Shown piece by piece: positions 58,918 to 62,824 of a stretch of DNA of 64,000 bases. Both the position numbers and the translations under genes were made by a program. This DNA comes from Ramazzottius varieornatus (lineage: Eukaryota > Animalia > Tardigrada), in contig BDGG01000014.1 in assembly GCA_001949185.1 (NCBI GenBank), forward strand, positions 837,378 to 901,377. Direction: 5' to 3'. Under the pieces are notes generated by a model that worked only from the letters and a program-made list of their open reading frames with translations, was not told the DNA's origin and ran no database searches. The stretch's first letter is position 1, and every line of letters begins with the position of its first letter.

Positions 58918-61900
58918 TTAACCTCAGCAACCTGCTTGGCCCAACGCAGCTCCGGAGCTCTTCGTTGTGGTTAACGTCGTGAAGATCTCGGAAGCTGTCG
59001 GATGGATGCCGGTTGTCGCGTCAAAGTCGCGCTTTTTCGCCCCCATCCGCATCGCCACCGCGTAACCCTAGAAGAAAAATAATAACAGTAGTCAAAACGG
59101 TTCCCTATCCAACCCATGAAGAACATTTGTCAGCGGAAGTTCAAACTTGTCACATTAGAATTAGTAATTATCACGCACTTGAGTTATTTCACCCGCGTTG
59201 GGTCCCAGGACATGAAATCCAACCACGCGGTCATCGTCGAGTTTATTGCAGACCAGTTTTCCATAGCACTGGTCCTCGGCGTGTCCAGGGACGGCCCACT
59301 CTAGGGGACGGTACAGCGTGTGGTACGTCTCGATGTTCTCCTTGCCAAACTTCTCCATGGCCATCTCTTCGGCATAGCCGATGGCACCGTACTCGATGGG
59401 TGTGAAAACGGTGGTGGGGATCATGTTGTAGTCGTAGGTATCGTTTGAGCCACCGTATAGTCTTCTGGCCAAAAGGATACCGGCGGCGATAGCTACTGGC
59501 GTCAGCTCGGGCTTGCCATCCAGCACATCTCCAATGGCGTAGACGTGCTCGACGCTGGTCTGCTCGTTCTCCGTTACCAGCTTGCCGGACTTCGGATTGA
59601 TCTACGGAGATGAAGAATCGTGAACCCCGGGACCGATGCAAACAAACTGGAAGCTCGGCAACAAATCCAACGAAACTGACTTCTCAAGTGGCGCATGTAC
59701 TCAGTGTCACTGGTCAACAGAATGCGCCACTTCGAAAAAAATCCTTTTCATCGAGTTGCCAAATAGCGCACGTTTTTAGTGCTGATGGCTGGAAGCGTGC
59801 GCCACTTCGGAAAAACCGTTCTATCGAAGCGTTTGCAACGCTTTCAACTTCACACAACCTGCAGAAGGGTCGAAGAAACGACTCTGGCAGCACCAATGGC
59901 GACCGGACAGAACCGCGCCGACGCCAAAAAACTGCATGACCGGATGATGGAAATCTCACCTTGACGCCGATCTTCTCCAGGCCGATATTGGTCGTGCAAG
60001 CGTTCCTCCCAACGGCGAAAAGTACCGTGTTGTACTCGTCCCAGCTTTCTTGACCGTTCATTTCCCAAGTGACCTTCAGTCTTCCCGGTAGTCCTTCTTC
60101 GATCTGTTCGACTTTCGTCGGCGTTGCGCCCCGAATGAACTTCACACCGTTCTCTTTCTCCATGTAGGCTCCGATCCTTTCTGCCATGTCCTGATCAAAA
60201 CCTCTCAGCAGAATAGACCTACGGACAAATAACAATTAAACACCTGTCAGACACGAATTTCCTCTGAATTCATTCTTCAATTATTTACCTGACCATCACC
60301 GTCACGTCAAAGCCCAGCTTCTTCAAGAAGCCTCCGCACTCCAGCGCGACATAGCTCGCTCCAACCACCAGCGTCTTGCCCGGTGGATAGGCTAGCGAGA
60401 AGATGTCGTCGGAGGTGATGCAGAACTGTTTGCCACCGGGAATGTCGGGGTACCGCGGTCGTCCGCCGGTGGCGATGATGAACCGTTCAGCTGTCACGGT
60501 TGACTCCTTTCCTTTGGCGTTGGTAGCGACTAACGTGTGGTCGTCGGTGAATTTAGCATAAGAATTCAGATAGGTCACGTTCATGTCCCGTAAAGCCACC
60601 TTGTACTTCCAGTTCAGGCCGTGGATGTAGTCCTGAAACACCAAATTCCTGTCAAAGTGCGCGGAAATCTTACCATGGGCACGGCTCTGACATGACCATC
60701 CATCATGGATCAGTGCCGTGCCCAATTGAAAAGCGCTGTTACGTCATCCACCGGTTTATTTGATTGAGCATCAAGTCAGCACCCTTTCAGTTTTCGTATG
60801 GAATAAAAAAAGCGACACCTTTTCTCACAAAGCTGAAAGACGACGAAAAACAAGCAGGGACGATGCGTTGTCTCGAGTAAAGAATTGCAACTGAAAGCTA
60901 AACAGACGCAAACCGAAGCAAGGAGCAAAAGATAACGGCTGACGGAAGCGAGTATAGCGTGTACAGTACCATTGATCGACTCGAGTGGTTTGATTACCTG
61001 AATGGCTTCAACCATTTTGTTCCAGTCATGTTGCGGGTTCTCCTCGCTCATCTGCCATCCGAACTTCTTCGCGTCGTCGTAATAGCCTCTTAGGAGTGCA
61101 GCCTGATGCATCAGCTTCTTAGGAATACATCCCACGTTGACACACGTGCCTCCCAAGCCCCATTTCGTTCCAATGGGTGTCGGTTGGACGTAGTCGAAGA
61201 CTGCCACTTTGGCTCCCAGTTTCGCTGCTTCTTTGCTCGTGGCCAGTCCACCGGAACCTCCACCAATCACTACCAGATCGTAATCGTACTTGTCTGTGGG
61301 TACAAACTTGATCTGGTTCGCTTGTTTGCTGCCATCCATCGGTGGAACTTTAGACTGTTGTTCCGATGGTGCCGAGGCGTTGGGGGTCCAAGGGAGCTCC
61401 GAACCCCTGGGTTGTCTGGGCTCGTCCTTGCCTGAAGGGCTGGATTGTCTCTTGCTGGCAGGCCGTGCTGAACCCCCTTGTATCAACGGCATCAATTGGC
61501 CTTCACTGTGCAGCTTCATCGTAGCGTCGCATCCGCCAATGTGCTGGCCTTTGACGAAGACACTCGGGACGGTTTTTTGACCAGTGATTGCCAGTAGAGC
61601 ATCTTGAATCTGCGAGCCGTTGGGGACGGTGTTGAGCTCGATGACGTTGGCTAGGATCTTCTGCTCTTCGAAGAGGGCTTTCACTTTGGTGCAGAAGGGA
61701 CAGGTGGTCTTGCTGAAGACGATGACAGGCACCGAGTCGTCCTTTATCCACTTTTCGACTTGTCTTCGCAGGTTGTCGGTCGACTGCGTGCCTTCTTGCG
61801 GTACCGAAGCACTGGAATATGTGCCCGTGGCAGGTGGATGGTCCGCGAAGGCCGAACCTGGGGCGTTACCCGGTGTGTGGACTGTGTCGTTCGACGTCGT

Positions 61901-62824
61901 GGTCGAATCGGCATTCGGACCACGACCCTAAACAACAAGAGCACTGTTAAACACTCTGCTTTAAAAATGAGAAGTAACGAAGCGTACTGTGTTCGAGACG
62001 TGACTGTTTTGGTGCGATTGGGAAGAATTCGAGTTCTGGGCACGGCCCTGTCACAGACAAACAATACGACTCAGGTCGTGCCGTAACATTAAAAATCCGC
62101 TTACCGTGTTGGAATTTTGTCCATTATTCTGGACGTCTAACATCTGCTTCAGCTGCCCACTTTTCAGCAGTCTCAAGGTATCGTCACATCCTCCGACGTG
62201 TTGGCCGTGGAAAAAGATGTTGGGAACGGTTTTCTGGCCAGTCAGCTGAAGGAGTATGTCTTGGATGGCAGGGCCATTTTCTAAGACGTCCAGCTCATGA
62301 ACGGACACGGGCACTTGTAGATCCCTGAAGACATCCTTCACCTTCATACAGTACGGACATGTCGTCTTGCTGAAGATAACAACAGGGTGTGAAGGCTCGT
62401 TGATCCATTTGGTCACCTGATTCCTTAGAGGATCAGCTTCGGCGATGGGAGGCATGGTGGAAAACGCCCGCTGAGAGGAGAAATCCCGATTTCCACTGCG
62501 TCGTTCAGAAAACGAGTCAGTGATGCCGCAGCGAAATCCAGTTACATTGATTGAATGGTAGTTCACAAGGCACTTGACTGCATCATGACGTAGAGCTGAC
62601 GCTACAGTCTGGCTCCCTTTATGGTGCTGTAACTCTTCACGGCGATAATTCCCAGAGGATGATAAGGAAGAAACACAGACACTCGTAACGGGAAGATGTT
62701 TAGGAATCGCTGGACGAACCTGTAAAGAGAAGGGTAAGTTGCGTCGGGTAGAAAGGGAGATAAGACGGTGGGAGGAGGCGAGCGTCTGCCAGGTGTTTAG
62801 CCACTGCCTCGGCCGACAATTCAT
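58918..62824 (-). CDS. TGR: Selenoprotein thioredoxin-glutathione reductase with two tandem glutaredoxin domains, 6 exons
   Basis: Exons 62824(or 62455)-62105, 61927-60998, 60632-60289, 60218-59960, 59601-59179 and 59067-58918, all GT-AG and in frame. Grx CPYC and CPFC; GGGSGG, CVNVGC, HPTASE; ends GGT TGC TGA GGT TAA = G-C-U-G (Sec at 58924-58926). Confidence 0.95.
59685..59808. repeat. Two tandem fixed-spacer palindrome units in TGR intron 4
   Basis: CAAGTGGCGCA-N27-TGCGCCACTTC and CAAATAGCGCA-N27-TGCGCCACTTC, period 75. Confidence 0.85.

Follow-up and report, generated by a model that had tools for sequence, protein, structure and literature searches.

A selenocysteine thioredoxin-glutathione reductase gene of the tardigrade Ramazzottius varieornatus with a probable tandem duplication of its glutaredoxin module

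Described thioredoxin-glutathione reductases and the RvY_16909 gene

Thioredoxin-glutathione reductase (TGR), which in flatworms is a drug target, connects the thioredoxin system with the glutathione system as their hub. The flatworm enzymes (Schistosoma mansoni 2V6O, 2X8C and 3H4K; S. japonicum 4LA1 and 9LWM; Echinococcus granulosus 5W1J) consist of an N-terminal dithiol glutaredoxin (Grx) domain of the CPYC type, a short linker and a selenocysteine (Sec) high-Mr thioredoxin reductase (TrxR) with a CVNVGC redox centre and a GCUG end. The TrxR of Brugia malayi (7P0X) is likewise a Grx-TrxR selenoprotein fusion with a single Grx. Mammalian TXNRD1 and TXNRD3 share the GCUG tail and are SECIS-dependent; the main form of TXNRD1 carries no Grx domain and TXNRD3 (TGR) carries one, so that two are found in neither.

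We analysed a window of 64,000 nucleotides (contig BDGG01000014.1, positions 837,378 to 901,377; all positions below are those of the window unless otherwise indicated) that contains the R. varieornatus gene RvY_16909 on the minus strand. In all likelihood, RvY_16909 is a Sec TGR gene in which the N-terminal Grx module has been tandem-duplicated (Table 1). The protein shares the domains of the flatworm TGRs, to which it is approximately 50% identical over approximately 650 aligned columns, and is 45-46% identical to the Brugia protein, whereas it has two Grx domains and disordered linkers of approximately 55 and 60 aa in place of the single Grx and the short linker of the flatworm enzymes. All solved TGR structures that were matched contain a single Grx domain, in agreement with the premise of the original prediction that characterised TGRs carry one. 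The TrxR module shares 62-63% identity with mammalian TXNRD1 (rat 3EAN and 1H6V; human 2ZZ0 and 2J3N), with superpositions at 1.1-1.5 Å (63% and 1.3 Å for rat TrxR1), and the nearest ESM Atlas cluster is named 'Thioredoxin reductase 3'.

RvY_16909 is the sole TrxR-type gene of the R. varieornatus genome, as in flatworms, and elsewhere in the genome the dimerisation domain occurs only at one GR-like and one DLD-like locus. The tardigrade retains a separate GR-like gene, unlike parasitic flatworms, which are not known to have one. As the only reductase of this type, the RvY_16909 product probably must serve every thioredoxin-using compartment.

Table 1. Features of the RvY_16909 locus in window coordinates (slashes mark exon boundaries)
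Feature	Position	Strand	Description
N-terminal extension, annotated (putative)	62456..62824	-	123 aa; upstream in-frame ATG at 62824; in GAV07014.1 and GAV07013.1
Grx1 coding part of exon 1	62105..62455	-	117 aa from MPP; ATG at 62455
Grx1 motifs	62359-62348 (CPYC)	-	TVP and GGCD also present; from translation
Exon 1 donor	62105	-	ACG/GTAAGC, phase 0
Cassette exon, alternative	61988..62047	-	60 nt, within the Grx1/Grx2 intron; 20 aa, Asn/Ser/Gln-rich
Exon 2 acceptor	61927 (exon begins)	-	TTTAG/GGT, phase 0
Exon 2	60998..61927	-	Linker 1, Grx2, linker 2, FAD-binding start of TrxR
Exon 2 motif CPFC	61702-61691	-	
Exon 2 motif CVNVGC	61144-61127	-	Redox centre
Exon 3	60289..60632	-	TrxR FAD/NADPH domain; ends in phase 2; Pfam match
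Exon 4	59960..60218	-	NADPH-binding domain; Pfam match
Exon 5	59179..59601	-	End of FAD domain and start of dimerisation (interface) domain; Pfam match
Exon 6 coding part	58918..59067	-	End of interface domain with HPTASE His/Glu motif; C-terminal Gly-Cys-Sec-Gly
UGA (Sec) codon	58926-58924	-	
TAA stop codon	58920-58918	-	
SECIS-like hairpin, type 2	58756..58821	-	3' UTR, 100-160 nt past the stop (putative)

Gene structure and the junction between the two glutaredoxin exons

All splice sites of the gene are GT-AG with compatible phases, and, counting from the MPP start, the exon lengths total 2,457 nt, that is, 819 codons. As predicted, exon 1 encodes a complete Grx domain (Grx1) from MPP to a phase-0 donor (ACG/GTAAG), and translation together with Pfam matches supports the further claim that the acceptor at 61927 leads in frame through a linker into a second Grx domain (Grx2), a second linker and a full TrxR ending in GCUG. 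The exons were searched singly, and whole-length comparisons used the public 939-aa protein. The Pfam Glutaredoxin family was matched in exon 1 (3.8e-18) and in exon 2 (7.6e-17), and Pyr_redox_2, Pyr_redox and Pyr_redox_dim were matched over exons 2-6. Grx1 and Grx2 share 54% identity (E = 3e-40), far above chance, and both contain a dithiol CxxC (CPYC/TVP/GGCD in Grx1, CPFC/TVP/GGCD in Grx2). Linker 1 is rich in Pro, Ser, Thr and Gly and increases to approximately 75 aa when the cassette exon is included. The AF2 model of the 939-aa protein comprises three confident modules with three stretches of pLDDT <50 between them; pLDDT exceeds 90 in Grx1 (residues 130-235) and in Grx2, and falls below 50 in the linkers (residues 236-287 and 393-451).

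The GenBank protein GAV07014.1 (RvY_16909-2, 939 aa) is the same model as that of the original prediction, and Grx1 is joined to Grx2 both in GAV07014.1 and in GAV07013.1. Isoform RvY_16909-1 (959 aa) includes the cassette exon (acceptor GACAG/GGCCGT, donor AACACA/GTACGC), which is skipped in RvY_16909-2, the two being otherwise identical; hence, contrary to what had been stated, 61927 is not the next acceptor after Grx1, given that the cassette exon intervenes. According to the genome paper (PMC5034306), the R. varieornatus gene models combine ab initio predictions with TopHat/Cufflinks assemblies of RNA-seq data, and the existence of two isoforms that differ by a 60-nt cassette exon points to a transcript-assembly origin of these models. 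A search of the protein collection for transcript-derived fragments of R. varieornatus with a 240-aa query (62824-62105) returned distant Grx proteins only.

From the sequence, the RNA-seq-derived public models and the collinear Hypsibius orthologue, we infer that splicing joins Grx1 to Grx2 and that Grx1, Grx2 and TrxR are encoded on one mRNA and make up one polypeptide. A TAG (61930-61928) lies immediately 5' of the exon 2 acceptor and there is no in-frame ATG upstream of CPFC, so that an intact Grx2 would be translatable only from an upstream exon. The same observations make it very improbable that a small glutaredoxin gene of its own, just upstream of the TGR, encodes Grx1 and that the public models are artificial fusions. 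In favour of such a gene, retention of the intron would lead to a stop 17 codons past the donor (62053-62051) and thus to a stand-alone 134-aa Grx, and an isoform of this kind, or one that lacks the Grx1 exon, may occur; however, Grx2 would then be left with a frame closed at the acceptor and with no start codon of its own. Furthermore, the two coding blocks are separated by just 177 nt and are bounded by a canonical donor and acceptor, both in phase 0, the Hypsibius model is collinear, and many transcript-length contigs of other taxa fuse 2-5 Grx domains to TrxR.

The original prediction placed the 5' end of the gene at 62824. This position is an in-frame ATG and the start of both public models, whereas the 123 residues that it adds match no Pfam family and are predicted to be disordered (pLDDT ~28). 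The frame 5' of 62455 is open for 156 codons, whereas the two alternative frames contain 6 and 9 stops (p ~0.002 for such an open frame from composition alone). The first approximately 35 residues of the extension are rich in Arg, Ser and Leu and include no acidic residues, and therefore look like a mitochondrial presequence. A candidate splice pair is present inside the extension (donor 62720/62719, acceptor 62471/62470, both phase 0); in the public models, 62456-62824 is a continuous exon, open throughout.

The candidate donor at 62720/62719, which follows the presequence-like 35-aa ORF, would match the phase of either acceptor, at 62470 or at 61927. The Grx1 exon might accordingly be usually skipped, or be included from one promoter only, such that the main product would be a single-Grx TGR, perhaps with the leader spliced to 61927, and the double-Grx form a minor one. 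Alternative splicing already occurs at the locus in the form of the cassette exon, and flatworm TGR genes produce mitochondrial and cytosolic variants from a single gene. Nevertheless, we consider this arrangement improbable, if less so than a separate Grx1 gene: the Grx1 domain is intact, its position is conserved, and it is present in both public isoforms as well as in the Hypsibius model, which starts at the Met equivalent to that at 62455.

Selenocysteine codon, SECIS-like hairpin and selenocysteine machinery

At the 3' end, the reading frame is GGT TGC TGA GGT TAA (58932-58918, minus strand), which corresponds to Gly-Cys-UGA-Gly-stop. Both public models terminate at the Cys and thus annotate neither the Sec-Gly tail nor the SECIS; the tail missing from the public annotation of RvY_16909 is needed for activity. 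The hairpin in the 3' UTR agrees with a SECIS in shape and position: its AUGA core is followed by a 12-nt helix II, an AAA bulge and a mini-stem, and GA lies on the 3' side. Its minimum free energy is -36 kcal/mol (z = -4.3 vs. shuffles). In an Rfam scan of a 326-nt region, the full-length alignment to SECIS_1 reached 18.4 bits (E = 0.55) and so fell short of the gathering score (35), and the Rfam scan over the wider 5.5-kb region yielded zero matches at E <= 1. The search of the R. varieornatus genome for Sec machinery covered tRNA-Sec and SepSecS, and both were identified, the former with 66.8 bits (cut-off 47) at C3:3002734-3002836 and the latter in four exons at C2:5977451-5978950. On these grounds, we infer Sec insertion into the R. 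varieornatus TGR. The predicted double-Grx selenoenzyme locus is thus upheld as to its Grx-Grx-TrxR order and GCUG end, with a SECIS-like hairpin that is sub-threshold in Rfam and a predicted Grx1-Grx2 junction.

Tandem glutaredoxin domains in other eukaryotes and their possible coupling to the selenocysteine arm

The collinear orthologue in Hypsibius exemplaris (OQV24166.1, 'Thioredoxin reductase 3', 748 aa) has the layout Grx-linker-Grx-TrxR, is 57% identical to the R. varieornatus protein over 818 columns and ends ...SGC just ahead of the Sec codon. It differs in that the N-terminal extension is missing from the model, the linker between Grx2 and TrxR is approximately 44 residues shorter, and Grx1 contains neither active-site Cys (no CxxC) and no TVP. 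Because Hypsibius Grx1 has lost the CxxC, the N-terminal Grx, judged by its motifs, is not necessarily catalytic across the tardigrade clade. In the Grx-domain tree, all four Grx domains of the two tardigrades group in a single clade (support 99/95), in which the Hypsibius Grx1 branch is long (1.2 changes per column) and the R. varieornatus Grx1 branch is ordinary (0.39). Pairing of the Ramazzottius and Hypsibius Grx1 domains was not recovered in the tree, and the AU test, on ~98 columns, does not reject it (p = 0.48).

Among the proteins retrieved, TGRs with 2-5 Grx domains form 35 clusters, and 34 of the 35 models end in GC at the Sec codon. These proteins include that of H. exemplaris and others from psyllids (Cacopsylla, Cyamophila and Diaphorina, 4-5 Grx), mirids (Apolygus and Lygus, 3-5), lice (Menopon and Polyplax, 3), the mite Dinothrombium (2), the rotifer Adineta steineri (2), the nucleariid protist Parvularia (2) and environmental JGI, Logan and ENA contigs of 2.3-3.5 kb, many of them transcript-length (2). 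As in R. varieornatus, the tandem Grx domains precede a TrxR with CVNVGC; copy number, linker length and retention of CxxC differ among the lineages. A literature search on multi-Grx TGRs, tardigrade TrxRs and selenoproteins, and RvY_16909 found no description of multi-Grx TGRs. The double-Grx architecture of R. varieornatus is real and is not unique, and public databases already contain both this gene model and the architecture. Rarity of the architecture is therefore not supported, considering that GAV07014.1 is identical to the proposed model and that 35 clusters from many eukaryotic lineages contain 2-5 Grx domains; the original prediction had named an architecture already common in databases as grounds for its refutation, and this is what was observed.

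The phylogeny of the Grx domains, which the original prediction proposed as a check, shows that the domains cluster by lineage and not by position, with separate duplications in each lineage. We tentatively propose that the amplification of Grx to 2-5 copies in Sec TGRs arose independently at least 7 times (hypsibioid tardigrades, a bdelloid rotifer, psyllids, mirids, lice, a mite, and nucleariid and other protists) and may define an unrecognised class of 'multivalent TGR', in which one Sec arm would recharge several tethered Grx modules.

The layout of the R. varieornatus protein would be an optional 123-aa leader followed by Grx1, a disordered linker, Grx2, a second disordered linker and TrxR (CVNVGC...GCUG). 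By analogy with mammalian TrxR1 and the flatworm TGR structures, the enzyme would form a head-to-tail homodimer, in which electrons would pass from NADPH via FAD and the CVNVGC dithiol to the other subunit, whose flexible C-terminal arm carries the Cys-Sec pair; as in those enzymes, the arm would then deliver them either to free thioredoxin or to the CxxC of a tethered Grx that reduces GSSG and glutathionylated proteins. Given that the dithiol and GSH-binding motifs are complete in both domains and that the tethers are long and flexible, Grx1 and Grx2 may well both be tethered electron acceptors of one Sec arm, an arrangement that would give a higher local Grx concentration and extend the reach of the enzyme.

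With the same architecture, it is less likely, yet quite possible, that the Sec arm serves Grx2 alone and that Grx1 is accessory, be it an independent GSH-dependent Grx, a module for regulation or substrate recruitment, or one on its way to catalytic loss as in Hypsibius, where the active-site Cys and TVP are gone and the branch is long. More than 200 residues (linkers and Grx2) separate Grx1 from the TrxR core, and the Grx domain of the filarial (Brugia malayi) TrxR is oriented differently from that of SmTGR (PMC8914392), both of which are compatible with an accessory Grx1. Conversely, R. varieornatus Grx1 retains CPYC, TVP and GGCD on a branch of ordinary length, and the modelled long disordered tethers would let either module reach the arm. 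A complex prediction for Grx1 (128-236) with the TrxR module (452-939) scored 0.08 and gives no verdict either way.

The original prediction also suggested that the double-Grx enzyme may matter for oxidative or desiccation stress. A link to desiccation is not supported: psyllids, mirids, lice, a mite and protists also have multi-Grx TGRs, the Grx1 of the anhydrobiotic H. exemplaris is devoid of active-site Cys, and the Paramacrobiotus isoform that was found (X2) has one Grx. The value of the finding is limited, as the model and the architecture were already public and nothing here links the duplication to desiccation tolerance.

If the proposal that both Grx domains are served by the arm holds, a multivalent TGR would be a high-capacity hub for deglutathionylation and GSSG reduction, and R. 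varieornatus would be a good model for the class, with both modules motif-intact and unusually long tethers. Should one Sec arm indeed serve several Grx domains, the stoichiometry, hysteresis and substrate range of TGR would have to be rethought, and the recurrence of the duplication would be explained.

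Anatomy and transcript models of the TGR gene

On the minus strand of the window, RvY_16909 is a compact gene predicted to encode a selenocysteine thioredoxin-glutathione reductase (TGR), with two glutaredoxin domains (Grx1 and Grx2) ahead of a thioredoxin reductase (TrxR) module and 2457 nt of coding sequence from the Met-Pro-Pro (MPP) start. The Grx1 exon ends at a phase-0 donor (ACG/GTAAGC), and exon 2 runs from a Pro/Ser/Thr/Gly-rich stretch through Grx2 (CPFC, TVP and GGCD) and then another low-complexity stretch into the start of TrxR (GGGSGG and CVNVGC). All introns are GT-AG with compatible phases. 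Pfam Glutaredoxin matched twice (3.8 × 10−18 in exon 1 and 7.6 × 10−17 in exon 2), matches to Pyr_redox_2, Pyr_redox and Pyr_redox_dim are distributed across exons 2-6, and Grx1 and Grx2 share 54% identity. The exons, motifs, splice sites and domains of the original prediction are thereby confirmed, but a cassette exon had been overlooked.

Features of the TGR locus, in window positions
Feature	Position	Strand	Basis and remarks
Grx1 coding exon	62455-62105	−	translation; Met-Pro-Pro start, 117 residues, CPYC, TVP and GGCD
Cassette exon, 60 nt	62047-61988	−	own AG and GT; encodes the 20 extra residues of RvY_16909-1
Exon 2, 930 nt	starts 61927	−	translation; acceptor TTTAG/GGT
TrxR exon 3	60632-60289	−	translation
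TrxR exon 4	60218-59960	−	translation
TrxR exon 5	59601-59179	−	translation
TrxR exon 6, coding part	59067-58918	−	translation; frame end Gly-Cys-TGA-Gly-TAA
SECIS-like hairpin, type-2 layout	58821-58756	−	minimum-energy fold; 100-160 nt past stop

The exact predicted model was already in the protein collection as 'hypothetical protein RvY_16909-2 [Ramazzottius varieornatus]' (GAV07014.1, 939 aa), which begins at the ATG at 62824, continues unspliced to 62105 and is joined to 61927. A second isoform, RvY_16909-1 (GAV07013.1, 959 aa), has 20 additional residues between the two blocks and is otherwise the same. The cassette exon starts with Gly-Arg and ends with Ser-Asn-Thr, the residues flanking the exon 1/exon 2 junction, and its DNA at both ends is similar to the ends of the adjoining exons, as if the junction itself had undergone a small duplication. 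The R. varieornatus gene models were TopHat/Cufflinks assemblies of six RNA-seq libraries, merged afterwards with ab initio models (PMC5034306), and we infer that an isoform pair differing by a small cassette exon is a typical product of transcript assembly.

The case for splicing of Grx1 to Grx2, though indirect, is strong. The codon immediately 5′ of the 61927 acceptor is TAG and the first in-frame ATG of exon 2 comes only after CPFC, so that an intact Grx2 needs a start from an upstream coding exon. Exon 1 and the cassette exon supply the closest donors in phase 0; the cassette exon contains no Met, and Grx1 is present in both public isoforms. In Hypsibius exemplaris, the orthologous protein (OQV24166.1, 748 aa) starts at the Met equivalent to that of MPP and is collinear, in the order Grx-linker-Grx-TrxR, with 57% identity over 818 columns. 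A search of the protein collection with a 240-aa query (62824-62105) found no transcript-derived fragments of R. varieornatus.

Selenocysteine and the sole TrxR-type enzyme

Both public isoforms and the Hypsibius model stop at the Cys before the UGA, and the Sec-Gly tail (58918-58926, minus strand) and the SECIS-like hairpin are unannotated in public records. The hairpin folds with an unpaired AUGA facing GA, together with a 12-nt helix, a bulged AAA and a small stem at the apex, and is more stable than 200 of 200 shuffles (z = −4.3). Rfam SECIS_1 aligned with it end to end at 18.4 bits, below the gathering score of 35 (E = 0.55, 326-nt scan), and a scan of the wider 5.5-kb region at E ≤ 1 reported no match. 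Elsewhere in the genome, a tRNA-Sec gene (contig C3:3002734-3002836, minus strand; 66.8 bits vs. a cut-off of 47) and a four-exon SepSecS gene (contig C2:5977451-5978950, plus strand) indicate that the Sec machinery is retained. We consider, with good but not complete confidence, that the UGA is read as Sec.

Searching the assembly (55.8 Mb, 200 contigs) for the dimerisation domain, we identified only three Pyr_redox_dim loci: the TGR gene and two others judged by eye to be glutathione-reductase-like (C1:5729038-5729668) and dihydrolipoamide-dehydrogenase-like (C2:5457844-5458470). There is no second TrxR among the three, and RvY_16909 is therefore the sole TrxR-type enzyme, presumably active in both cytosol and mitochondria. 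A role in both compartments is consistent with the annotated 123-aa extension, whose start resembles a presequence in being rich in Arg, Ser and Leu and lacking acidic residues. Upstream of the MPP start (62456-62923, minus strand), the frame stays open for 156 codons (p ~0.002 by composition), the other two frames having 6 and 9 stops. The extension has no Pfam match, is predicted to be disordered and is missing from the Hypsibius model. The public models read 62456-62824 as continuous exon; a candidate phase-0 donor (62720/62719) and a strong acceptor (62471/62470) lie inside the extension, and their joining could place a 35-aa presequence-like exon onto Grx1, shortening the extension.

Immediately past the TGR 3′ end lies a 244-aa ORF (57304-58038, plus strand) with a weak match to tyrosine recombinases (Pfam Phage_integrase, E = 0.073, below cut-off), perhaps left over from a Crypton- or DIRS-type element. 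The database entry P0271 (ENA contig, 646 nt) has a 127-aa product ~90% identical to TGR exon 3, the start of which is read-through of intron-like sequence; the contig probably represents genomic DNA of a close Ramazzottius relative present in an environmental assembly.

Multi-Grx TGRs in other lineages

When exon 2 was scanned with HMMER against 1.84 billion representatives, the top-ranked protein came from a psyllid and combines TrxR with four Grx domains in 1034 aa. Using this protein and P0175 (GAV07014.1) as queries and counting Grx domains with a small HMM, we identified 35 proteins that contain CVNVGC and carry between two and five Grx domains, 34 of which terminate in Gly-Cys, as expected of models cut at the Sec codon. 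They come from psyllids (Cacopsylla, Cyamophila and Diaphorina, 4-5 domains), mirid bugs (Apolygus and Lygus, 3-5), lice (Menopon and Polyplax, 3, part of them degenerate), and, with two domains each, the mite Dinothrombium, the bdelloid rotifer Adineta steineri, the tardigrade Hypsibius, the nucleariid Parvularia, and JGI, Logan and ENA contigs of transcript length (2.3-3.5 kb). The notion that the architecture is special was thus not borne out, an identical model having been publicly available since 2016, with multi-Grx Sec-TGRs widespread in databases. Three or four tandem Grx domains also occur with a methionine sulfoxide reductase A (PMSR) domain (P0021, P0022 and P0274-P0276), another family with Grx modules multiplied ahead of a redox enzyme.

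Grouping follows lineage, not position, in the maximum-likelihood tree built from 64 Grx domains. All four tardigrade domains fall in a single clade (99/95), the Adineta pair are sisters (100/100), the Parvularia pair and the mite pair likewise, and psyllid and mirid copies fall in their own clusters. This grouping indicates that Grx duplication occurred independently many times. The Paramacrobiotus metropolitanus isoform found (622 aa) has a single Grx, nearest to Ramazzottius Grx2 (61%), which suggests that the tardigrade duplication arose in the hypsibioid lineage. The Ramazzottius and Hypsibius N-terminal copies do not pair in the tree, but their orthology is not rejected by an AU test (p = 0.48).

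Predicted structure and proposed function

An AlphaFold2 model of P0175 (alignment depth 52 sequences) contains three confident modules (residues 130-235, 288-392 and 452-939; pLDDT mostly >90) separated and preceded by residues with pLDDT <50 (1-129, 236-287 and 393-451), a predicted beads-on-a-string architecture. Superposition of the TrxR module with TrxR1 of rat and human gives 1.1-1.5 Å (62-63% identity). Schistosome and Echinococcus TGRs match the model over its whole length with ~50% identity, and the rmsd to them is ~8 Å because Grx placement is different or undefined. The solved relatives matched each have at most one Grx, whereas the R. varieornatus protein has two.

In flatworm TGR and mammalian TrxR, reduction proceeds from NADPH via FAD and CVNVGC to Cys-Sec on the partner subunit's arm, and from there via thioredoxin or a fused Grx to GSSG or glutathionylated proteins. 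Both R. varieornatus Grx domains, each on a flexible 55-60-residue tether, would take electrons from a single Sec arm. The chief competing mechanism, that Grx2 alone is wired to the arm and Grx1 is accessory, draws on Hypsibius Grx1, which evolves fast and has lost both Cys and TVP; in R. varieornatus, however, the dithiol and GSH-binding motifs are complete in Grx1 as well as Grx2. The suggested link to desiccation is unsupported, as lice, protists and sap-sucking bugs also have the duplication, and the anhydrobiotic Hypsibius has an N-terminal Grx that appears, from its residues, to be catalytically dead. The best reading remains that both Grx modules would be served by a single Sec arm, and the remaining interest is that multi-Grx TGRs, of which our literature search found no description or characterisation, have arisen repeatedly.
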